Shown here: positions 289 through 53,170 of the stretch, one piece after another | Layout of the letters: each line of letters begins with the position of its first letter | Numbering within the stretch: the first letter of the stretch is position 1 | Assembly: GCA_030704615.1 (NCBI GenBank) | Contig: CM060733.1 | Location: 7,750,001-7,814,000, forward strand | DNA from: Takakia lepidozioides | Lineage: Eukaryota; Plantae; Bryophyta | DNA length: 64,000 nucleotides | Direction of reading: 5' to 3' | The notes under the pieces: model-generated | Seen by the model: the letters and a program-made list of their open reading frames with translations, nothing else | What the model was told of the DNA's origin: nothing | Database searches by the model: none | Position numbers and translations under genes: made by a program

Positions 289-2595
289 ATGAGCTCAACG
301 GAGTCGGACTCGGAGTCGGCCAGAGATTTTCCCAGATCTGTAGAGGAAGAAGAGAAGACGGAGAATGGCAATTCACATGAAGAAAATGGGAACTTTATGG
401 AAGAAAATGGTCCTTCATCTCGCCGCTCTCCTGGCCGGGCCTCCAAATCTGCCTCACTTTTCTCTCTTGCGTTCCCTATATCTAGAGTTCGAAAGCTGGT
501 GAAGAGCGAGGGTGAAATTCAGTGGGTTGGCGTGGAGGCGGGTTTCCTTATTGCTAAAGCTGCTGTAAGTATTCTGGGTGTGTAATTTGGCACGAGAAAG
601 ATGATAAAGTGCTTAAGATGGGCTACAAAATACTTTTATCTCTAATTTCCAAGTCCTGCGGGTATATCAGGGCAACAATTGAACTTGGAAATGTAATGTT
701 TTGTTTCTGGACATCTCGTGGCTTTCTTGTAAGTGGCCATCACAAGCTCTGCCAGACTTCTGGACGTAGGAATTAAATGGATCAAGGCCTATAGGGGGCA
801 CACAGAGAGTTGGCTCTCTAGTATAGGTGTGTGAGGGAGATTATTGTCCTTCTGGATTTTTTCTGATTGGACCAGCTATACTCTTTCAAGCCAGAATAGG
901 AACTATGTCTCTGGGTCCAGTAGGGGACTCCGTTCTAGGAAATTTAAAATTCCTCATCATTTACGTATCTCTGAGCAACCACTTTGTGGTTAGCATTAGT
1001 TGGCCCTTGAGAAATCTCTTGGTCCACACAGGAGTTTTACAAAGTAAATGGTTTCATTCCATATCATCAGCTGAAGGGACTTAGGATGTTTTTGAGACTG
1101 GAGAACAAGTAACATTTCCTGCACACTTGCCTCTGATACATACTTCCATCTGGGTTTTATGAGTGTATTCTTACATGCAGCAGAATCAGTTGAACAAGGG
1201 CTACTTTGACTGTATGAGTATCAATGATCATATATTGATGCATGCGTGGAGGGGAAAGGGGGGACCATTTCAATTGAGGTGGCAAAGAAGTAAGCCAGAG
1301 GGGAAGTTTTGGCAGGATGGGCTCTCTATCAAGGATCTTTGCCAGGACAGTATTAAATTGAAGATTGAAGGGCTGGGGGAACAGGAACTGTTTTTGGAGA
1401 AGTTTGTGGAGGATGCGTTTGATAGGATGCAAGACAAAAAGCGTGCCTGTGTTGCCTACTCTGACTTATGTATAACTCCTCCATTTCCCTTTATTGGCTG
1501 CCACTGTTCTTGAAATATACTCAATGCTAGGATTTGCCAAAATATAGTTTGGATAGTAGAAATAACCTTATTATGGGAGTATACATTGAGAGAATGTACT
1601 CACAAGACATTGTTTGCTGGAGAGAGAGAGAGAGAGAGAAGTACCAAAAGGGTGTCACTATCAATGTAGGCTTGGGGCTATTGCTCTGCTGAGATATAAC
1701 CCCTCCCATTGTAGTCCTCAGTGTGCAGTACTCACAGTATTAAACTGCCATGGTTCTCTTGCCACTTAATGACATGTCTCAAACCCAATTTGGGCCAAGT
1801 GCATGGGAGGGTGAGAGTCAATACAAGAGAGAGTCAGAGAGCACTGGTAGATACAGATGGGCTTCTGTTCCAATTGTATGGTCTCTGAAAGTCCCTTTCC
1901 ACCAAAAAACTGGGCGTGAGGTCTACGGCCACAAGTCTACGGCAAACAATGTCTTCTGATTACATTTTATATAGTCTCTGAAAGGTTCATGGTTGAACTT
2001 CTCCAGTGATACTGATTGATTGTTTCAATTGTGCTGGACAGCATCCCATGTGGTGGGCACAGAGAGACTGGAGTTTCTGGCAGGTTAGCCATCTCTCTTC
2101 TTGTCCTTTCTCACTTTGTCACAGATGTAAGATCCATCTGATCCATCATATCAAACTCACATGTCTGTCTTTTGTTTTTCTCTGTATTTATCATACCTGT
2201 GTGAGAAGGAGGGCTAGGGTATTAGTGCAGATAGCACAGAGCTTTCCAATATGATATTGATGCCAGCCTTTAAATCAACCAATTGTTGTTGGCTGTGTGC
2301 AAGTGCAATGGCAATGTTGGGCTGGAGTTCATAGCCTGCAGGGTTGAAACCTCACAATCAGCACCTAGTGGACTAGTATCCAATAGGTATTGGTTTCAAG
2401 GGTATGTAGTAGCCAACATTTGCAGGGATGGGGCAATGAGTATCTCTCTCTTTTCTGCCATCTCATCTATCGGGCATCCTCATCTAACGTGGCTTCTCGA
2501 ATAAGGGTCTGGGATGTGGACTCTGTGCAGACTTTGTACCAGAGAAAATGTTGGTGTCAAGTATTCTACCTGGGAAAGCTATGGTGGAAAAGTAA
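289..2595 (+). CDS. Histone-fold protein, DNA polymerase epsilon subunit C / NF-YC (DPB3/CHRAC-like); exons 289-564, 1385-1469, 2042-2083, 2531-2595
   Basis: The spliced frame reads FPISRVRKLVKSEGEI..EAGFLIAKAA|ELFLEKFVEDAF..KKRACVAYSDL|SSHVVGTERLEFLA|DFVPEKM..EK*, a typical H2A-like histone fold. All introns are GT-AG and phase-compatible. Confidence 0.85.
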
Positions 2596-3479
2596 GACAT
2601 CTCTCCAAAAGAGCATGGTAAGCAACCAAACATGGCTTTTGTATATATAAATTGAGTCTATGTGTGAGACAGATTCCACTGGCTTCTTTTGTAAACTGGT
2701 TATCTCAGAGCCTAGAACCAGGAACTAGAAAATGAGTTTTTAAATGCGACACTTTCTGGTATTTGTGTTGCACTGGAGAATCTTTTGCTGAGAGATTTTT
2801 GATAAGAACTCTCCAATACTGGGACGGAAGTCAGTGGTGATCTTGCACAATAGATCGATCAGTTTTTCATTTAAGCAGGACGCCCCTCTGGTTGGGTGCT
2901 TGTGGCTTGCCTGTGCATAACTGGGGTGATCCTTCAAAATGGTCCAACTGTCCATAGACCCTTCATGATTAGTCTCTGTAAATTCACTAGATTTTTAAAA
3001 AACTTTATGATTTTGCCTATTTGAATCAGGAGTTGTGTAGTAGAATGAGAATCTAAACCAGCTTAAAGATTTATGCTAGTGAAACCATTGTGGTGGCATG
3101 TTTGCTGAATCAGTCTTGCTAATTGGTATTTTTATCTTGATTTGAAGAAGATTAGTTTATTTTCATTCAGTTTGTTTTCTTCCTTGCATGGGGGGATAGG
3201 TAGAAGGTTGTCAGGAAAGAACGCTGGAAAATGATAAATGAGGTATGCCTACAAGTTCCTTAAAAACTGTAAAATATTTCTGGCAGAAACTGTTTTAATG
3301 ATGTTTTTTTCGGCCTGATCAGCACTGCGGATTGCTTCAAGTCCAAATTCTCAGCATTGTTAGATTTTGTTTTCAGAAATTAATATTATAAAACAAGAGA
3401 GGAGTACAAGTTGAGAAGACAATTGATGACTGCATAAGTTACTGGTGACAATACCAACCCTGATTGCCTAGATGGTTCT

Positions 3480-4285: not shown

Positions 4286-5371
4286 TCATATTACATGGCT
4301 ACATACATTGGGTTCAAAACTTATCCCCCGAAATTGAAAGTTATCTTCTTCTAGCAATTGAACATCATCTCTACAAATTTCCAGCCTTTGTGGACGGCAA
4401 AGCGGCCACCATTGCCAGGTCTTCTGGCTTATGTTGTACAGTACTGCAGGCAGGCTACCATCAGAGCCCCTAATAGTGAAAAATATAAAATCGCCACTTC
4501 CGAAAGAGAAGAGGGCCTTTGAAGGAGGCAGCACCATCAGTGAAAGAAAGGGTCTGCAATACTCCTCCTTGGGCATGCATGCTGTAACAGCCCATTCTTG
4601 CTTTGCATAATCCAGCTCCCATATCCTTATTTGTGTTTCCTGGGTCTTAGAATTGTCACACCGCATTTGAATACCACCCATTAGAAATAGTCTTCCTTGC
4701 CACTCATATAGAGATGGAGCAATGGGATTCTTAGGTGGCATTTTAATGTTGAGATCGACCCACATGTTGTGCTTCAAGTCATATGCTAGAAGAAGGTATG
4801 GTGGAGTAGCTGTTAAACAAAAGAAGTATCCTTTGTAAAACTGCATATGCCCTCGCCCAACGTAGTTGCCACCCTTTGGAGGGGTGTCTTGTACTGTCCA
4901 TCTGTTGCTCCTGGAGTCAAATTTTTCCACAGCTAATCTGTGAGAGAAGGGATTGATTATGTCACCATAGAGAAAAATCTGAAACGAATTGGATGTCGGG
5001 TCGTGGGTCATGCCAACTGCCTGGATGGAATTGAGCTGGCGCATCGGAGGTAGCTTTCTCCACTCTTGTGTGAGAGGGTTGAGAACCACAACGTAGTTGC
5101 ATGTGAACCATTCGTGAGCGAAGCACAAGAGACCGCCAGCCGAGGCCACCACACAGTACTGGGGTGCGTCAAATGGGATGGGCACAGTATGCCAATCCTT
5201 ACACGAAAGATCATAAGCTTCCAATTTTTCACTAGTTGATGACATAACAATCCACGGCTTCACTGACGAGTTCTTTCCAGAGAGTGCATGGCAGTCCTTA
5301 GAGAGTGCATGGCAGTCCTTGGAGAGTCCACGAGATTTGGAGCTCTCTTCCTTGCTCATTATCAAATCCAT
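4286..5371 (-). CDS. Kelch-like/F-box-associated beta-propeller protein (plant F-box/Kelch family C-terminal domain); start uncertain, frame is open to 5743
   Basis: Single-exon ORF with KPWIVM..AYD..W, VASAGGLLCF, VVLNPLTQEWRKLPPM, VEKFDS..W, LLAYDL..W, GRLFLMGG, IWELD..W and FEP near the C-terminus. Confidence 0.8.
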   Translation of the reverse strand: MDLIMSKEESSKSRGLSKDCHALSKDCHALSGKNSSVKPWIVMSSTSEKLEAYDLSCKDWHTVPIPFDAPQYCVVASAGGLLCFAHEWFTCNYVVVLNPLTQEWRKLPPMRQLNSIQAVGMTHDPTSNSFQIFLYGDIINPFSHRLAVEKFDSRSNRWTVQDTPPKGGNYVGRGHMQFYKGYFFCLTATPPYLLLAYDLKHNMWVDLNIKMPPKNPIAPSLYEWQGRLFLMGGIQMRCDNSKTQETQIRIWELDYAKQEWAVTACMPKEEYCRPFLSLMVLPPSKALFSFGSGDFIFFTIRGSDGSLPAVLYNISQKTWQWWPLCRPQRLEICRDDVQLLEEDNFQFRGISFEPNVCSHVI

Positions 5372-7658
5372 TCGATGTGGTCTATGAAACGTTGCAGGCG
5401 CTGTTTGTTTCACATCTTTCATCGGTCGAAACACCATGATTAGTACTAGAGTACCCTCTGCGTGCTTGATCGCTCCCAGCACCGATGGTATACACCGATT
5501 GATCCAGGATTGCGCCGATCCACACTCCCTACAACTCGTTGAACACTCTTGGCGATACGGTTTCGACCGTGATGACGACTGGACCTCGAGTGTGCGCACT
5601 TTTTTCTTCCGGGAAGAAGCTTCCAGCACCAAGATCCACGCCAATTGCAGCACCAAACTGTAATCCTGTAAAGACTGCTGGAGGGATGGAATTGCTACGA
5701 ACATGCTCCAAAACCCAAGAGAAGACACACACTGTATCTGCATTCGCGATCACGAAACAGTGCTTCCACACCGATGGAAGAGACCTGTAGACTTTATATC
5801 TGCTCAAGATCTCGAGAGGAATGCTCGGATACTCTGGAATAACTAGAGGAAAAGCTGACGAGTTCATACCAACTTATAGCCGATCACCGCTCATTGGGCC
5901 GAAAGAGATGGAGCCAGCCTTTTGTGCACGAAGCTTCGTCCAAATTAAGGGGGACTGTTGGGTCCCACCGACTCTGATTTTCCTAACGAGATACTATCCA
6001 TAGCAAATTCTTTACATATCTTCTTTGTTTGTCTCGTCTTTTTCGGTTTTGGATTGGACCTGCTCACAATAAAGAACTCAATTTGGTACTTTTGTCTGTC
6101 GATGTTTCAGATTACTAAGTTAGTGAGAACTTCAGGTCGGCTCTACACACGATCCCAATAAAAAACTCAAGATTAATCAAGTCTGATCGAAAAAATAGGA
6201 TCTTCCTCACTTCACTGGGGTGACAGCGGGCGCAATCAACAAACCCATGATATATAGAACTCGGTGAATAACTCGGTGTAAGATAATGTATGGGAAGTAG
6301 AGGAGTTGGGTGCTTCCAGGAAGGAAAAGCAAGTCGGTGTGGCTTCACATCAGAAGTCGAAAAATTGGCGTGGGCACCACGCAAGTTTTGCAGATCTGGA
6401 CAAGGAAGCTTCAGCGTGCGCCTCATTAACCTCACTTGCACCCCGACTCTAAACTCGTTTAAGTATTTCTAATGATGTACTAGAGCACCTGACATCGAAG
6501 GCCTCTGGAGAGATTTGGGAAGTCTCCATGTTTTGGAAGGGAGGATTACAAGGACGCAGGAACCTGTCCATGTGCAGGTGGAAATGAGCTTTTGCCTGCT
6601 CTCTTGTTAAGTAATTCAATTACTTGGACTACTATCCAAGTCCCCTACATTCCAGTGCTGTAGCTTTCCTTTCCAAGACCAGGGCGACATTCATTGGTAG
6701 TACGTCACTTTCCTTGTTACATACTGGTGAAATTTTAAAATACCTGCCGGACATGAGACTGAACGTTCCAGGAGTTGGTACTTGGTAGGTTCCAGTTTGG
6801 AAAGCAGCTTTCTAGCTGGCTGTGCGTGGTAGTCACCCTCCCTACACATCATAGCAGCATTTCATGTTCGACATGACATTTCTCTGACAGCTTGCTGCTG
6901 TGACCATATTTTGATCAAAACGACCATATATTGATATATCAAACACCAAGTTCTTAAGTTGATCTGGATCGACAATCCCAGCTGTCCACATTGCACGCGC
7001 ACCACTTCATTTTACGAATCTCTGGTTGAGCTAGCTGCCTCCTTCATAACCACTCCTGAAAAGAGAAACCGCGAAAATAGTGACCCTCAAATATCGAATC
7101 ATTCCCTATCCAATCCAAGTCCACGCAGTCGCTTGTTAACATGAAATCAAACATATCTCAACATCAACTAAACAATGATAGAATCCAGTAACCTTGCCCC
7201 ATCCGCTCGAATTTCTCAAAAAACAATCCCGCAAGTAGAAAGAAACCATGGACCACAGTGTACCTGCAACCGATCACACCGTCCGTCGATTCTTCCTCCA
7301 GCCAAGCAATTAAAACCTGATCCGCGGTTATCAACAAACGGGGACGAATTACGTTTTCTACATCGATAGCCATTTGGAAGCAGACTTCAATCATACTCTC
7401 AGAATATCAGATACACCTGAAAGAGGAAACTCAGAAATCTACCAAGACGTAAAGCACATCTGGGCATAACAGCTTCACATCTGGCCATCGGTGACCCAGC
7501 TTCACCGCATTCGATCTCCAGGTCTCCATTACAAAATCCCAAGTTTCAGAAGTAGAGTCAGCCACGCAGGCCAAGCTCATCACGACGCTGCGAAAAATCC
7601 TTTGTTCGCTACATTGAGATCGTGGTAGGAACATGTTCTCGTATTGTGAACGTTCTAA

Positions 7659-14122
<6,464 letters not shown>

Positions 14123-16192: not shown

Positions 16193-17059
16193 ATGGCTGC
16201 TAACACTGCAGAAGGGACTGCATGTATCAGGGGAAGGGAGGTTCGTCGAAGGGATGTTAACCTCCACCTGCATGTATGCAGCATAGGTCTGCTAGTTTCT
16301 TTCTTCTTCGCCCAGTGTACTGCATGGACATGTTATAAGGCATCTAGAGATGCACTGCTTGAATTCAGAAATGCTCTCATCGATCCTACAGACACACTTT
16401 TTTCAACTTGGGATGCTGGTGAAGACGACTGCTGCAAGTGGCAGCATGTTACGTGCGTGGCAGGTCATGTGACCATGCTCAGTATAGTGGCGTTCAACTC
16501 AACCTCGGGGGAAGGAGAAGTGTATCGGAATACGAGCTACACGGGAAGGCAGCTGGGATCATCACTAGTCGACCTGCAAGATCTCCAAACACTGAAACTT
16601 CAGTGGATTTCATTCAATTGCACAATTCCAGCGGACTGGGGTTCGTTCTGCAGCATAACCTCGATAACTCTGAACGACTGTGATTTGCAGGGCTCGATTC
16701 CTTCCAACCTAGCAAATGTAACTAATCTGCAACACGTGGACTTGGAATCCAACACTTTGACAGGCTCGATACCCGGGGAGCTCTGCAATCTCAAACATCT
16801 CAATTACTTGGATGTCGCCTACAACGATCTGAACGGAGCTGTCCCCAGTTGCCTTTATAGCGCGTCGGGTATAACGACTCTCCTTACTGGTCATCAAGCG
16901 GAAAGTACCCCAGCTGATAGCGGAGGCGGAGGCGGTAGCGTTAGTGGATCGGGCGGCAGTGCGTCTAGTGGGGCTTACTTATCCGGCCACCTCCCTTTTC
17001 TCTCGCAAACACTAGGACTACTAGTATTTGTGATTTTCCAGCTCGGTTACCAGCTATGA
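16193..17059 (+). CDS. Extracellular LRR protein (LRRNT + ~4 plant LRRs), probably GPI-anchored
   Basis: Hydrophobic signal-like segment, LRRNT (ALLEFRNAL..W..DCCKWQHVTC), LxxLxLxxNxLxGxIP repeats, G/S linker and a hydrophobic C-terminus. Confidence 0.85.
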   Translation: MAANTAEGTACIRGREVRRRDVNLHLHVCSIGLLVSFFFAQCTAWTCYKASRDALLEFRNALIDPTDTLFSTWDAGEDDCCKWQHVTCVAGHVTMLSIVAFNSTSGEGEVYRNTSYTGRQLGSSLVDLQDLQTLKLQWISFNCTIPADWGSFCSITSITLNDCDLQGSIPSNLANVTNLQHVDLESNTLTGSIPGELCNLKHLNYLDVAYNDLNGAVPSCLYSASGITTLLTGHQAESTPADSGGGGGSVSGSGGSASSGAYLSGHLPFLSQTLGLLVFVIFQLGYQL

Positions 17060-18470: not shown

Positions 18471-19496
18471 GGGAGGGATCTCATACTCTCGCTCCCACAA
18501 TTAAATTCTCTACGTGTTTTGTGGGTGGAGTTGATTGTGCATGATGTCTCGTACAAACCAACTCATCTACCACCATATATGACTGTATGATGCTGAAGCT
18601 GCAAGTGCCTAGACAGAAAGAGATCAGATGTATGCACGCACGAGGGCTGGACAAACCACTTGTGCTCGGAACAACGGTCTCCATCCGAGTCTGGACATAT
18701 GGTTTGTAAACAATTTACACCCATACTGTTTACTATATTTTACCCTGGCGGTTGGAGACAGCTACATTACGACTGCGCCATGCATCAACAGGAGGTGATC
18801 TGCATCTCATGCATGCTCATTTTCAGGCTCAGATTTATTTCAAGGAGAGAAAAATGAGTGCAGCCGTTAAGCCTACGGGACGAAAGGAGGGACCATGTAC
18901 TCGTTGATCGTTCCCTATGTTTCATATCGGCAAGCGATTGGCCAAACAGCTATGGGCAACCTACTTAATGGGATCATGAATGAGGAGGGAGTCTAGATGA
19001 GTCCGAGAGAAATTCCCATTTGAGGGGGTCTGGCGGGACTGGACAGGGGTGCCGGTCCTGTCCCGGGGTCCAAGACTGTCCCGGGGTCCAGAATATTGGA
19101 GTAGATAGGTACGTAGAGGGAAGGATTGAGATTTCCTTCCAACTGTATAAGCCCAATCCGCAATCTTGAGATTGAGGAGCCAATTTCATAGCTCACAGGG
19201 CTATATTGTTTGTAACTGCAACTGCTTTGAAACATCAACTTCATCCGGAAACAATACGCTTGGAGGTAAAAATAGACCACTATTAAAAGTACCTCCAGGG
19301 TGGTAAAAGTACGTTTAAAATAGAATTATCTTAAAATACCTCTTGCCATGCACACAGGTTTAGACAGCAAGCACTGCTTATGTAGAAAGGGGCTCAGAAC
19401 CGAGTATTCTTCTCTTCAGTTGCTGCCGAGCTTTGCTGTTTCACGTCTTTGCTTTTCACGGTGGGAGTGGAAGGGTTGCAGCTACGCACAGCCGCC

Positions 19497-20717
19497 ATGG
19501 ACGCCTCTGTGTGGGGAAGATTGTCGGGAGACCTGGTGGATGCTGTTATTACTTTCTTGCCAGTTTTCAGTTTACTTCGATTTCGCGTTGTTTGCAAATA
19601 CTGGTGTTCTTTGATCGATTCTCCTTCACTCCGCAAGACCTCTGCAGCGATCGAAGGAGCATCTCCTCTTATGCAATCATCTGTAGGTTTTCTTGTGCAT
19701 CATTCATATAATGACGGACGAGTTAATGTACAATTTTGCACGTACGATCTTGTTGTGGACCAGTGGCAGGCAAGTAGGAGCCACCTCAGGAGTTTAAACA
19801 CAAACGACGCAGAGTGCTGGAAAGTGGAGTTTGGAGCAGGAGGCCTTATATGTTGGGTGACTCACCCTTTTCGTAAGGATGGGATGGAAATTGAGGTATT
19901 GAACCCACTGACCGGTGGCTCCAGAATTTTGCCTCCTACGCTCAATCGTGGGTGGATCCCAGCGATAGTGAAGGTGTTCATGGATGAGAGAACAAAGACG
20001 TACAAGATTATTCTTGTAGGAAATTGTGCGCATAGGGATGAAGACGAGAGATACCAGATCACAGAGATCTACGATGGAGCGTTGGGTTCGTGGAAACACG
20101 GTGGACGCTTCCTGCCTTACAGACCATGTGATCACTATCACCGGTACTCTGGACGGGATACAATTAGTGTTGAGCACAAAGGGGTTTTGTACTTTGTACT
20201 TCGTATGAGGTGTAGAACTAGGGGAGTACTATTATATCTGATGCTTGCGTACAACATTGAACGAGATTTATGGAGTGAGACGCCACACATCCTTCCCAAA
20301 GTAGTCCACGAACGTGAGGAGTTTGCTCTTGTGAAGTGTGAGGGACGCTTATTACTCGCACGAATAGTTTCTCGGGATCAGTCCAACAACATCTCACATT
20401 TCAACATCTTCGAATTGAATATTTCAAGCAAAGAGTGGGTCCCTCTATTCAAAGTTCCAGTTCCAATCGATTGTTATCCGCGGGATCGAAATCTAAGATA
20501 CAGAGTGATAAGCTTACCAGGTAACCAACTGGCTATAACAAAATCCATGCCACAATGGCGTGCTGAAGGCGTATTGCACGTATGGTTGTATGACATGGTT
20601 CGTAAATCAACGCGGTTGTTGGCCTCTTGTCCCCTTTATGAGTCACTTGCAAATTCTTTTCATCCAGGTACAGACTTTTCATTTCGACCGGCTTTGTTGC
20701 GGACACTGGAGGTGTAG
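19497..20717 (+). CDS. F-box protein with Kelch-like/FBA C-terminal domain
   Basis: F-box VWGRLSGDLVDAVITFLPVFSLLRFRVVCKYW, then GAGGLICW, VLNPLTG..LPP, TEIYD..W, LAYNIE..W, LVKCEGRL; single exon with ATG in a gccgccATGg context. Confidence 0.9.
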   Translation: MDASVWGRLSGDLVDAVITFLPVFSLLRFRVVCKYWCSLIDSPSLRKTSAAIEGASPLMQSSVGFLVHHSYNDGRVNVQFCTYDLVVDQWQASRSHLRSLNTNDAECWKVEFGAGGLICWVTHPFRKDGMEIEVLNPLTGGSRILPPTLNRGWIPAIVKVFMDERTKTYKIILVGNCAHRDEDERYQITEIYDGALGSWKHGGRFLPYRPCDHYHRYSGRDTISVEHKGVLYFVLRMRCRTRGVLLYLMLAYNIERDLWSETPHILPKVVHEREEFALVKCEGRLLLARIVSRDQSNNISHFNIFELNISSKEWVPLFKVPVPIDCYPRDRNLRYRVISLPGNQLAITKSMPQWRAEGVLHVWLYDMVRKSTRLLASCPLYESLANSFHPGTDFSFRPALLRTLEV

Positions 20718-21155
20718 AAATTTTGCAAAGCATGGTGTATAGCTGCACCGTTTTGCATTCACTCTTTTAGTTTGGACAAATTGGTTCCTCAGTTATGGTT
20801 GCAGCTTTCGTAGATTTTGTTGGTTTGAATGAGTCACTTTTGTTGCTGCAATCTTAACTGAACGCCCAGGATGCAGCCAACACCTAGGGTTACCCTGTAT
20901 GGCTCATAAAGCCAACACCTGTATATAACGGTATGGAGCCGTCAAAATACTAGTGATGAAGTCCTCCTGTCAGGAGGAGGATGCATAAAGGCATAATGAG
21001 ACAAGGAGATCCACAACAGCGGTGTGTGTTGGTCTAGAGAGCTGCTTACATTTTGTTTTGCACATCCGTGATCACTACTGTGCACAATCTCAATCTCCAC
21101 TGCTTTCCCTACGCTGCCATTCTGGACCTCACTCGATCTTGTTGTAGTATGTCAA

Positions 21156-24100
21156 TCAATTACTCCACACACAGCATTCCGCGAATGGTCCTGGAGTTCC
21201 AGTCCACCCTTCAACGCATTGGAGCAATGGTGTCGCAAGCTTCCCCTCAGAGATGGCAATATACACTTTCTCGATTTCCTGTCCAGGAGACACGGTCCTC
21301 AGGCCTGACAGCATCTGGGTGCCCAACTCAGAACGAACGAACTTGTACAGAGGGTATGTCCTGCAGTCGTGAATACGGTTGGGCACTGGAGAATAACCCT
21401 CGGAATCGTAGGCATCGCGTACCAGAGAGACCGTGGCATTCAGGCGCGCTTTCAATTCCTCCTCAAAGATTGAAATCCTGCTGAAAACAAAGGTAGATTC
21501 CGACTTGTCGTTCTTGGGGTTTGGAAGTGAGTGGTCCACCAACACTTCCCTCAACTTTTGCATGAGAGGGTAGGTTGCACTCGTAACATCATCGATGTAG
21601 CTGAAAACAGGCTGGCAATCCACCACACTCAGCAGGTCCTTCTCGCATAAATGCGATGGCAATAGTGCGCCATTGTCGTCTGTAAAAATTGTGTTCTTGG
21701 CAACCTGCGTAACAACTTGCTTGACTGTAGACTGCATTGTCTCCTCAATGTGGCGGAGGTCAATCGCCTGGCAGAGGCCAACCAAGAAAGTGGAGCTCAT
21801 AAGCTTCAAAATCTCAATGGATTCCTCAGTTTTTCTAGCTGACACTAATGCCAGTGAGTTCACATCCTGGTTGTGCTGCTCAGCACTCTGTACATGGGTG
21901 GTTACCGGGTTGGCCAGGTAGTTGAGCTCTGAGAGGTATGATGCCATTGCTATCTCCCCTCCCTTCATGCCGTAGTCCAGACTAGGGTTAGGACCTCCAC
22001 TCAAATTCGATGGCAGTCCATTGTTGTAGTAGTCATTGACAAGCTCGGAGAATTGTGCAAACATCAGCTTCCCAATTGCTGCTATAGCCAAGCGCATGTT
22101 ATCCATAGACGCCCCAATGCTGATTCCTTGGAAGTTGCCACCATGGAGGGCCCTGTCCCCAGCAGCATCCATAATTGGGTTGTCACTCACAGAGTTGATT
22201 TCCCTCTCAATAGCATGAGTGGCATTGCGAATGGCCTCCACCTGGATGCAATATCCAACCTGTTAGTTGTACATCCAGCACAGCAAAATCCAAACCCGCG
22301 GAATGCATCAATATGTGAACTGCACAGCTGGAATTGTAACGAGGATAATCTACTGATCGTCCCTGGCGTTTCTTTTGAACCAAATCTGTTGGTGAAGCAT
22401 GGAGGAGGTGTACCTGCGGACCCAGCCATTGTGGGGAAGTACGTAGTGCGTAACGATCCTGTTTGGGTTTCTTCAATGGGTCAGTCCTGTGCAATGCAGC
22501 AGCTGCCTTCATGTAAGAGCTTCCATCAAGAATCCACTCCATGATAGCTGCTGCCTCCATTTGGCCTGGGTGATGCTTCAGTTTGTGTGTTAACGGATCA
22601 GCAAACTCTGGCTTTCCTTGCATCACCTCACAGAAGAGGGCTGAGAGAACCTCAGCAAGTAGGGCTAACACATTTCCATCATAACAGACCGTTGATGCCA
22701 AGCCTGACCCTACTGCTGTGCCATTAACGAGGGCGACTCCTTCTTTTGGCTGCAGCTCAAAGGGCTTCTCCACTCCAGCGATCTTGAGAGCTTCTACAGC
22801 TGAAATCTCCTCTCCGTCCTCTGTGACAGCTCTGGAGTTGGGCCTGGCAGTTAGGAGCCCTACATTTGACACAAATGGGTTGCAAAAGCTCTCAGTGCAC
22901 CATTATCACATCAGTCACAAGATTTGCGTTGTAAGCTTTACTCACCTATCTGAAAATTGTGGGCTTGCTGTCAATTGAGAATCTTGCTCATCACTCAATA
23001 CACAGTGATTCTAAGCACAACAATCACAGGAAGCACACAAAAAAATCAGTGCATAAGACAGCTGAAGACTAGCGTCTCACATACCAGCAATATAAGACAT
23101 AGCAACAAGGTCTCCCACAGTTCCTCGGAGCGGTAATTTTGGTGTGACATGAGAGTTTAGAAGCTTTTGCATGGCCTCGAGAATTTCCCAACGAATGGCT
23201 GAGTACCCTTGCATCAATGTGTTGATGTGCACCAGCATGGCCGCCCGCGTGGTGCATGCTGGCATGGTGTTACCATCGCCCTTGGCACCAATGACTCCGG
23301 CATTGAGAAACCTGAACTCATAAGTTGTCATGCGATGTACATAACATCAGCAGCTGAATACATTGGCATTCACTTAGGACCATTAGCAGCTTGTAAAGCA
23401 CAAATTGCTGTTTCTCCCTTACATGGTCTAACCTAAGAACAATGTGTAAGAAGGTGGCCGCGTCTCATTGTCACACTCAACCTCAAATTCTTTGTCCACC
23501 CAAAGGGCTAGTGGCAAGGGCCCTCACAACATCTATGAGGCTCAACGCTGCAGGTTTCAGGAACTCCTGGTATGCTCGAGTGGACAGTTTATTTCAACGT
23601 AACGGACTTTCTACTGCTTTCCTATTACCAATGAATCCAGATTGAGGTGGACATCACATCCAGACATGACCGCAACAGACTCATTAGGAGAGAGCTTATG
23701 GAATTACATGTCAAGAGAACTTGGAAGCTACCCAATCTCACGACAAAGCTCCACTTCTATCGAGAGACATTCTTGGTGCTCCGCGATGATAGAATCTTGA
23801 GACCAAATTACCTTTCAGCACCCTTATCTCCTTCCCTCCTGAGGGCATTGGGGCAGTTCAGGTGGGTTCCCACAACCTCCGGATAGAGACTGGCAGATGG
23901 GAAAACCTGCAACGGGAGGACCGCCTATGTCCAGCTTGCATAGGGCGCAGCAAGGAAATTGAAACTGAAGAACACTTCTTCTTCTACTGCCCTCTATACT
24001 ACGAGATCCGTGGGAGATTCCACTGTTTATTCAGTGGAACCCAAACTCTCACTGATGTCTTCCACTATGAGGATCAAAAATGTACCTGCACGAGGCCTTC

Positions 24101-24702
24101 ACCCTTAGACAATCGCTAGAACATTAATTGTGGTCTCTGGATTTGTTCCTCTCTCATGTTTTCTTCCATTTTGTCCCATAAGCTCTATGAGCTTTCCGCG
24201 GACGTTATAAAGCACCATTTCATTTCATTTGTTCATAGAACTGTTTGGCGCTAAGTAGTGTCCTTGAATTTGTTTCTGTGAGGACAAACTAAATTTGGTA
24301 GCAGAGAGTCTGTGCACAGCACCTGATTAGCTCTTTCTGGAGCTCCTTTGCCTGCTGGGTCCGGCGGTGAGATGTCGCTCCAAAACCTGTCGTGACCCCA
24401 TTGATATCTCCACCATTCATGATCTTCTGAAGGACCCAATTGGAGCTTTCATCTACTCGGTTCTTGGCTCTGGCAGCATCCAGCTCTACTCTCACTTCAG
24501 GTCGGCGGGCTATGGCTGCCACTTGAGCTATTGTCAAATTCACACCCTTGATGGTTACTTCCTTTGACGCATAGAAAGTAGTGACCATCTGCTTCACCTC
24601 CTCGAGGTGGCTACATTGCAGAGCTGTTGCGGCCTTTGCCCACTTTAGGGGGTCCGAGAGCTTGGTCCTGCATCCATTGGCCCCCTCTCCCATGGACTCC
24701 AT
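21156..24702 (-). CDS. PAL: Phenylalanine ammonia-lyase homolog, 712 aa, with catalytic motifs altered; exons 24702-24323, 23311-23085, 22859-22414, 22241-21156
   Basis: [65 protein letters not shown]. Exon lengths 380+227+446+1086=2139 nt give an uninterrupted frame. Confidence 0.95.
23437..24230 (+). mobile_element. 5'-truncated LINE (RTE-X/Crack/L2-like 3' end) in PAL intron 1, antisense to PAL
   Basis: [31 protein letters not shown]-terminal zinc finger; ends in ATAAA plus a (CATTT)3 tail. Confidence 0.8.
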
Positions 24703-25634
24703 GTTGCTGGATGCGAGTAAGAGAGAAAGACAACTTTGAAAGGAGGAAGAGAGGGAGAGCTCACGTGTACTTGCTGCTTCCCACAAAACAGAGGAAATTT
24801 TTGGAACCTCTCTGGATCATCCACTGCTTTCAGCAACTGCACAAGATAATTTCACGAGGGAGGCTGGACTTGATTGTGTGCAAAGTTGTTTCAAGTTTTC
24901 CTGGGTGTATGCTTCAGAGGATGGGGTACTAAGAAGAATGTTAACACACGTTTTTTTAAGTGTTGTAGCTATAAGGGGGGTCCCACTCAGCAACGAGGAA
25001 GGGGCACACAGAACGCATAGAGAGGACTGTTTGGTCAGAGGCTGCACACTTCACAGTCAAGCTTGGCGGTCTGTTCTATCAGTGCATATAGTACAACACT
25101 TTTTGTCAAAATGGTATGCGGGCCCTGCATGGTGATGTGATCGTCTTACCACTTCAATGTGTTGACTTTCGAAAGTCGTTGCACTTACGCTCTATCTTCG
25201 CTAGAAAAGCATGTTTTTCTTCATCGACTGATGAAAACACTGTCACTGTAGCTTGGTTCATGCGACATAAAATTCACCGAGTATATTTGATGCAGTACAC
25301 TGCTCATCGCTGAGACGTGGATAAAATATGCCAGTGAACCTTTCCCATTGTCCGTAGTTTTAATGTGTACACTTGCGGTTCCAAATAAGCGATTTGCGCA
25401 AAAGCCACTCGCAGAAACTACTTATCTCCTCCGAACTACTTTCTCGCTCCGCGTGCTGACCTGTTCGCATGCGAGAGCCTGGGATGCATCTGTACCACCC
25501 ACACTCAGGTTCTCTAATCCAGTGCTGAATGGAATGATATGCAGTCTGCGGGAGTGAACTGACACATGAATTACGCTTGCTTCGGCAGCAGGCACTCTTT
25601 TAATGAAGAATTCCTCTCTTTCTTTCTATACCTC

Positions 25635-38289: not shown

Positions 38290-38435
38290 TGCAGGTAAGC
38301 AGCCATGCATTTCTGATCTTCATAGTGAGAGATTTCAGTGAGAGTTTGGGTTCCACGGAGTAGACAGTGGAATCCCCACGGATCTCATAGTATATAGGAC
38401 AATAGAAGAAGTGTTCTTCAGTTTCAATTTCATGG
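38290..38435 (-). mobile_element. Second fragment of the LINE family found in PAL intron 1
   Basis: The reverse complement reads GAAATTGAAACTGAAGAACACTTCTTC..TACTATGAGATCCGTGGG..GGAACCCAAACTCTCACTGA, matching 23955-24080. Confidence 0.85.
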
Positions 38436-51390: not shown

Positions 51391-53170
51391 TTATCCAAAC
51401 ACTTCAAACTCAAACTCGTGCAAGATTATTAACCACCTTGCTATCCTTCCACTTATCAAAGGTTTGTTCACCAAATATATCAGAGCCTGGTGATCCACAT
51501 AAAACATAAACTTTCTTCCCAATAGGTAATGCCTGAATTTCTTGACTGCATAAATCATTGTCAGTGCTTCTCTTTCAGTTGTGCTATAGTTCCTTTCAGC
51601 ACTGTTCATCAACCTGCTAGCATAGTACACAGGTGAATCTATATTTCTTGTAACATTTTGGGCTAATACTGCTCCCAACGCTTCTCCTGAGGCATCACAG
51701 TGAACATGAAATACTACATGCTAGTGAGGGTTAATCAGTACAGGTGTAGTTGTTACTGACAATGTAAGTTCCTCAAAAGCCGGTTGACATTCAGCTGTCC
51801 ATGCAAACACTGCATATTTCTTTAGAAGCTTGCTCAATGGTGCTGCTATCTGTGCATACCGTCTGACAAATCTTCTGTAATAACTGGTTTGTCCAAGGAA
51901 TCTCCTTAGACTCTTAACATTTACTGGTGGTGGAGAGGCTTTAATGGCCTCTATCTTTCTGGGATCCACAAGAAGTCCCCTCTTACACACAATGTGTCCC
52001 AAAAGCACCCCTGAGTTCACACAGAAAGTATACTTCTCTGGATTCAGGCCCAGACCTCTCATCCTGCATCTGGCCAAACATAACTCCAATTTATGTAAGT
52101 GCTCATTCTTAGAGCTGTACACACTGAAATCATCCAAGAACACCTGCATGAAATCATCCAGATACTCATGAAAAGATTCACTTATCACTCTCTGAAAGGT
52201 TGCTGGTGCATTACAAAGTCCAAAAGGCATGACTTTGTATGCATAAGCACCCCAGTCTGTGATGAAAGCTATCTTTCCCTGGTCTTCTTCTGCCACTTGC
52301 ACTTGATTATAACCACTGAAGCCATCCATGAATGAATACATCTCATGGCCTGCCACAGTGTCCAATACCGCTTCTGTGAATGGCAAAGAGAAAGGATCTT
52401 TCTTCGTGCAAGCATTCAACTTCTTATAGTTCACACAAACTCTCAATTTACCATTCTTCTTGGGGACTATCACAATGGGTGACAACCAAGTTGTATATTC
52501 TATCGGGTATATAAACTTAGCCTCAGCCAACTTCTTGATCTCTTCTCCAACCTTCTGTGCATAGTTGGGATTCATTTTGTACCTTGCCTGTTTGATTGGT
52601 ACTGACCCTGGTTCCAGTTCAATCTTATGCTGACGATCTTAGGTGGTATCTCTTTTAGATCCTCGTAGCTCCAAGCAAATACATCTCTGTATTTGATGAA
52701 CAAACTCTTAGCTTCCTCAAAGAATTCTGGCTCCAAATCAGCCCCTACCTTCACCATCCTCAGTTCCTCTTCAGTTCCCACATTCACTTCTCTCACCTGC
52801 TCATCAGCTGTGATTGTCCAACCAGTCACCACTTCATCCTGTAAACTCACAATGGCTGGTTTCTCTAGGATTTCCATTTCTCCCTCTCTTTCTTCATAGA
52901 AATGTGGTGGGTAACTGCTTGTTTCACCCTCACTGGGTGTGCAACGAACAGGGTAGCTTCATGCTCCTCATCAAGTCCTCCCCTCCAGTCATACTCCTTG
53001 ACCCCTCGAGGTCTTCTCATAGCAGGTAATCTACTAGATTTCTTAGTGGTGATTTGTATCTTGTGCATCCTATCATGCACAGTTAGTCACTGGGAATTCC
53101 AGTCATGAAATACCTAGCCTGTTTCAGCCACGGTCGACCCAACAATAAGGAGGTGAAGACTTGCGGGTCC
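51391..53170 (-). mobile_element. Ty3/gypsy (non-chromovirus-like) pol fragment: protease end, RT and RNase H
   Basis: LLLGRPWL, DVFAWSY, WLSPIVIVPKKNGKLRVCV, FMDGFSGYNQ, MPFGLCNAPATFQR, FLDDF, CDASG..GAVL, NYSTTEREAL, DHQAL; frameshifts; no integrase seen. Confidence 0.93.

Follow-up and report, generated by a model that had tools for sequence, protein, structure and literature searches.

The gene studied here belongs to the PAL family, through which metabolism is committed to flavonoids, lignin precursors and UV screens. It has an open frame and lacks active-site residues that PAL genes otherwise keep. Catalysis in PAL, TAL and HAL needs both MIO and the Tyr110-equivalent base, and the locus therefore raises the question of whether such a copy is dying or is maintained in a non-catalytic role. 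It is the one PAL gene in the window, by which we mean the whole 64,000-nt stretch of Takakia lepidozioides DNA that was analysed. The initial annotation of this stretch had proposed a candidate pseudoenzyme. T. lepidozioides has 20 PAL genes with high UV-B-induced expression (PMC13120521).

Gene structure and active-site residues

Four exons on the minus strand make up the gene; they join to 2139 nt (712 amino acids and a stop) and are open throughout. The three introns (1011, 225 and 172 nt) all run GT..AG. A check of frame and splicing found no stop, frameshift or broken splice site, which bears out the complete 712-aa frame first annotated. All three intron positions are found again in other moss PAL genes (L002, L038–L045). 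Database searches were carried out exon by exon, and the joined model was used in local scripts. Exons 1, 3 and 4 match PF00221 above the Pfam cut-off, placing the gene in this superfamily, and exon 2 aligns with PAL structures (E 5e-25). Residue numbers of the window protein are anchored on alignments with parsley PAL 1W27 and extended by motif (with PMC4102242 and PMC11427684). The features are as follows.

24703–24900, minus strand: 5' leader region, seen in RNA-type contigs from two further samples
24323–24702, minus strand: exon 1, 380 nt, ATG at 24702; holds the inner lid loop
24400–24402, minus strand: codon 101, AAT (Asn) at the position of catalytic Tyr110; TAT in paralogue contigs
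23312–24322, minus strand: intron 1, 1011 nt, phase 2 within a conserved Arg codon
23085–23311, minus strand: exon 2, 227 nt, the MIO-loop exon; L143M, R155H, G165A, P197A, L198M
23115–23116, minus strand: deletion breakpoint, 9 nt lost in frame, Thr201-Ala202-Ser203 gone (parsley numbering)
22860–23084, minus strand: intron 2, 225 nt; absent from the spanning RNA-type contigs of X5 and X6
22414–22859, minus strand: exon 3, 446 nt; L256V equivalent; N260, Q348, Y351 and R354 equivalents retained
22242–22413, minus strand: intron 3, 172 nt
21156–22241, minus strand: exon 4, 1086 nt including the stop; N370S, I375M, T391I, P392S, V395A, G482A; equivalents of N384, F400, K456, I460, E484, N487 and Q488 and the shielding domain retained
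21000–21155, minus strand: 3' untranslated region, present in one RNA-type contig

Part of intron 1 (23490–24270) is a very high-copy repeat with a contig depth of 1e5–8e5, a piece of which occurs again at 38308–38431. An 85-aa open reading frame within it (23862–24119, plus strand) is Cys/His-rich and resembles a LINE C-terminus, with no Pfam match. In exon 4, codons 391–392 read ATC AGC (T391I and P392S), at least three adjacent base changes, which suggests a single complex mutation or repeated hits. Elsewhere the window holds the first exon of a methionyl-tRNA synthetase, its N-terminus resembling a transit peptide (7728–8327, plus strand), a small secreted-type LRR protein (LRRNT_2 and LRRs) with a Gly/Ser-rich hydrophobic C-terminus (16193–17059, plus strand) and a retroelement reverse transcriptase, RVT_1 (51721–52575, minus strand).

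When exon 2 is aligned with 1W27, the gap comprises exactly three residues, T201-A202-S203, between 23116 and 23115. Of the three MIO residues only Gly204 is thus left, so that the window protein has no Ala(or Ser/Thr/Cys)-Ser-Gly triad to form MIO. The 9-nt in-frame loss annotated near 23115 is therefore real in the alignment, as is the replacement of Tyr110 of the inner lid loop by Asn (AAT, 24402–24400). The other motif changes reported at the same time (LVRIN>LVHIN, GYSG>GYSA, EGLAL>EGVAL, NSVNDNP>NSVSDNP and FQGTP>FQGIS) are each present in the comparison alignment, as R155H, G165A, L244V, N370S and T391I/P392S. A concentration of changes at active-site motifs was not borne out statistically, as clustering along the sequence among invariant columns falls short of significance (P 0.07 and 0.27). 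All 64 full-length PALs used for comparison keep both the Ser and the Tyr, and in metagenome PAL loci all MIO-loop motifs (58) and Tyr-loop motifs (53) that were read are intact.

An assembly error was considered and rejected. A read-derived Logan DNA contig (X1, record 7) spans 22884–23173, which takes in the deletion together with the greater part of intron 2, with 0 differences and 0 gaps. This supplies the read check proposed with the annotation and is evidence against such an error, X1 being possibly the assembly's own sample.

In the pocket, Tyr110 and Thr201-Ala202-Ser203 are lost and Leu256 is replaced by Val, a known pocket-widening change (PMC11427684). The retained residues are Phe116, Leu134, Phe137, Leu138, Gly204, Leu206, Asn260, Gln348, Tyr351, Arg354, Asn384, Phe400, Lys456, Ile460, Glu484, Asn487 and Gln488, a retention that a change rate of 6% would give by chance and that is not significant alone. 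They include the selectivity pair Phe137/Leu138 and the carboxylate clamp Arg354/Tyr351/Asn384. The parsley Y110F mutant has no activity and still binds L-Phe with a Kd of 23 uM (PMC5573973). Since MIO and Tyr110 are both lost, PAL activity is excluded on established chemistry, and the window protein should not deaminate Phe. Essential catalytic residues are missing from an otherwise complete frame, as in a pseudoenzyme. Judged by its sequence, the window gene belongs to the plant PAL family as a derived member and is not an active PAL.

Transcripts, paralogues and the search for orthologues

Contigs from two other samples, X5 and X6, match the gene; the RNA type of these runs is the tool's guess. 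They cover its 5' part with one difference in 448–472 nt and include pieces of exon 4 and, in X5, the 3' untranslated region. Introns 1 and 2 are skipped, and the interior of intron 2 is covered in DNA alone. The X6 contig over the exon 2/exon 3 joint has a depth of 25.6, close to the 27–28 of the gene's own pieces, and so probably represents the spliced transcript of the window gene. At 24364–24402, no RNA contig of the gene's own was found in X5 or X6, all being of the paralogue type with Tyr. The two lesions are confirmed in DNA alone, the RNA tables showing joints and ends and not the deletion. The window PAL is apparently transcribed and spliced. The RNA check suggested at the outset was thus answered in part, by the leader, the 3' end and the splice joints, but not by the Asn codon.

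The nearest proteins are Sphagnum PALs (82% identity over about 695 aa), and trees place the gene inside the moss PAL radiation with no close named relative. Paralogue contigs from the same organism have about 91–95% DNA identity. At 24402 they encode Tyr, and at three further changed sites they have the conserved residue, which places the lesions after that duplication. Among the coding differences listed against these contigs, a biased subset, 23 of 33 are synonymous.

The annotation had also called for orthologues with the same lesions. None was found for the window gene when the 90% protein set was searched with exons 4 and 2 and with a Sphagnum proxy, the 50% set with exon 2, or metagenome contigs with exon 3; the closest matches of these searches reach at most 82%, or 91% for exon 3 alone. 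The ESM Atlas returned generic PF00221 clusters alone. A scan of prokaryotic genomes with exon 3 of locus L065, described below, returned bacterial and archaeal HAL-like matches alone (31–38%). A single-sequence fold of Sphagnum PAL was uninformative (pLDDT 35).

Several other variants were seen among the comparison proteins. A Sphagnum clade (P0158, P0161, P0162, P0163 and P0165) retains ASG and Tyr and has in common R113L, K285T, a 2-aa outer-lid deletion and D337V, and P0161–P0165 additionally carry Q348L and I460V (parsley numbering for these two). On these changes the clade is a candidate changed-substrate lyase. In P0157, a Sphagnum-type PAL, the selectivity pair Phe-Leu is replaced by Val-Met. 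Moss and gymnosperm PALs commonly have Ser-Ser-Gly at the Ala-Ser-Gly position (P0159, P0160, P0195, P0204, P0215, P0221).

A second moss lineage with both losses

New here is a second moss PAL lineage with the same double loss and a dN/dS of 0.14. The exon 2 search led to a fragment with a MIO-loop deletion (P0249) and from it to three loci, L065, L066 and L067 (Logan SRR2148099, SRR24605837 and SRR12282709). The P0249 search selected for the deletion and not for the loss of Tyr, which lies in a different exon. All three loci carry a 3-aa deletion in the same register and have Gln at Tyr110. The L065 gene spans 1693–3316. The outer-lid loop, including Gln348, is absent, and there is no stop in the 351–409 codons visible, the 3' part being outside the view. 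L065 and L067 have 94% DNA identity, with a dS of 0.134, a dN of 0.019 and a dN/dS of 0.143 (Fisher P 1.5e-10, from two taxa). As both carry both lesions, purifying selection has acted on a protein without MIO and without Tyr.

The lineage resembles the window gene in having introns 1 and 2, in keeping Tyr351, Arg354, Asn260, Asn384 and Phe400, and in its open frame as far as seen. However, it belongs to another moss PAL clade, sits on a much longer branch, and lacks both the outer-lid loop and intron 3. The near-invariant columns changed in both are Tyr110 and Ser203 only, a count of two that is not significant. With the trait columns removed, the tree groups L065–L067 with PALs of Ceratodon, Pohlia and Physcomitrium (support 99/97), and a tree forced to unite them with the window gene is rejected only marginally (AU p 0.049). 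A single origin is disfavoured by these results and by the close Tyr-bearing paralogues in the Takakia genome. Parallel origin is the better reading, and the lineage probably made the same two losses independently of the window gene.

Exon 1 of a gene related to this type was also seen in SRR18067246. At another locus (L064:2437–4203, P0255) there is a frameshifted PAL with Tyr110 replaced by His and a 2-aa MIO-loop deletion, resembling the Vitis sequence P0248. Such lesions therefore occur in broken genes too.

Maintenance, decay and possible function

The window gene is best regarded, with moderate confidence, as a maintained PAL pseudoenzyme rather than a dying copy. The non-catalytic role first suggested is supported by the intact frame, the conservative spectrum of substitutions, the probable transcripts, and the double loss under purifying selection in L065–L067. 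The main alternative is a young pseudogene: a somewhat divergent active paralogue of an expanded PAL family that was recently knocked out, is transcribed by inertia and has as yet no stop. The paralogues are consistent with this, as their closeness and their conserved residues would make the copy young and redundant, and the broken L064 shows a Tyr loss together with a MIO-loop deletion.

The substitutions bear on the choice. At 325 near-invariant columns the window PAL has 18 changes, against 0–16 (median about 3) in the 64 comparison PALs. Only 1 of the 17 point changes at such columns is radical (BLOSUM62 <= -2), where 33% is expected under neutrality (P about 0.01). Two moss PAL pseudogenes used as controls (L055 and L063) have stops and 12 radical changes of 30 (Fisher P 0.017 versus the window gene). 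The gene does not show the neutral spectrum of a pseudogene, subject to possible changes before the knock-out. Under neutral decay at about 0.022 substitutions per site, the probability of no stop is 0.16–0.2; at the same depth, that of no stop or frameshift is 0.0004–0.03, depending on the assumed indel rate, for a gene that was picked for its open frame, a selection effect which favours the young pseudogene. After one knock-out, the probability that a second hit falls in any one of about ten key codons ahead of a stop or frameshift is 0.06–0.13, or about 0.01 for Tyr110 alone. However, moss PALs with an intact ASG reach 21–26 changes at conserved columns, compared with 30 in the window gene. 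Since such fast-evolving PALs exist, some of the conservative changes could be older than the knock-out. This takes force from both neutral tests and again suits a young pseudogene.

On indirect evidence, selection appears to keep the frame and fold of the window gene. The young pseudogene, raised as a possibility from the start, is weakened by the conservative spectrum, by the low probability of a second key hit and by the demonstrable conservation of the same state in L065/L067. We consider it the less likely reading, though no lesion-bearing orthologue of the window gene was found. New MIO-independent chemistry, also entertained in the annotation, with the opened pocket running another elimination or rearrangement, is very improbable: fold members without MIO are active (ergothionase, histidine betaine lyase; bioRxiv 10.64898/2026.04.22.720169), the carboxylate clamp is retained, L256V widens the pocket (PMC11427684) and the L065 lineage shows a long branch followed by constraint, but both the trimethylammonia-lyases and the MIO-independent route of AvPAL use the Tyr that is lost here and in L065–L067, and no new catalytic residue is common to the two lineages (Asn versus Gln).

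For a maintained pseudoenzyme the following course may be proposed. A moss PAL gene would have been duplicated recently and one copy deprived of the Ala-Ser that forms MIO and of the catalytic Tyr; the product of that copy would still fold and form tetramers with active paralogues. Three subunits contribute to each PAL active site, and neighbours supply Gln348/Tyr351/Arg354 and Lys456/Ile460. The protein's own site is dead, and the retained Gln348, Tyr351, Arg354, Lys456 and Ile460 would reach into the sites of neighbouring subunits. The lost residues are those of its own site and the donated ones are kept, a pattern that fits the hypothesis of an inert subunit completing partner sites. Such a subunit could re-tune PAL activity, dilute it or stabilise it, and its pocket may have kept the ability to bind Phe or cinnamate and buffer the ligand. 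Within mixed tetramers, the likely part of the window protein is that of an inert or ligand-binding subunit. Active heterotetramers of plant PAL isoforms are known (Reichert 2009, as cited in PMC5543151).

A ubiquitination decoy was also suggested initially. An F-box/beta-propeller gene (19449–20717, plus strand) adjoins the PAL gene and is convergent with it, and a kelch-type propeller gene lies farther away (4286–5743, minus strand). In seed plants, kelch F-box proteins target PAL for degradation. As a pointer to a decoy, the adjoining F-box gene is circumstantial, and the linkage may be chance.

More speculatively, mosses may have evolved dead PAL subunits at least twice, by the same 3-residue MIO-loop deletion and loss of Tyr110, and these would control the flow into phenylpropanoid and UV-screen metabolism through tetramers or through binding of Phe or cinnamate. 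We offer this wider proposal tentatively; a regulatory layer of dead subunits for MIO enzymes is not described in the searchable papers. A conserved dead PAL subunit, if true, would be a new mode of pathway regulation, and the window PAL would then be a natural test of how far a subunit without MIO supports the active sites of its neighbours. The ASG triad is a routine filter in defining PAL genes (e.g. PMC11526608), and copies without it have likely been dropped from surveys.

No description of a PAL pseudoenzyme was found in the searchable literature, most subscription journals lying outside it. Compared with plant PAL (EC 4.3.1.24; parsley PcPAL 1W27 and Sphagnum), the window protein has the same PF00221 domain, exon 2 fit, shielding domain and most pocket residues. 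However, it lacks the MIO Ala-Ser and Tyr110 and carries L256V. PDX1.2 and CHIL (chalcone isomerase-like) are dead plant paralogues kept for an active partner in a complex. They belong to other families, and their roles have been shown by experiment, whereas that of the window gene is one we infer. The MIO-less trimethylammonia-lyases belong to the same superfamily and are active with the same fold (bioRxiv 10.64898/2026.04.22.720169). They too have no Ala-Ser-Gly triad, and ergothionase 6S7J gives a weak match to exon 2; however, they are bacterial and retain their conserved catalytic Tyr, whereas the window gene has lost it and is nested in moss PALs. Arabidopsis PAL3 and PAL3-like are likewise PAL paralogues without Phe activity, but in PAL3 the ASG is retained and the substrate has changed (bioRxiv 10.64898/2026.09.15.751672).
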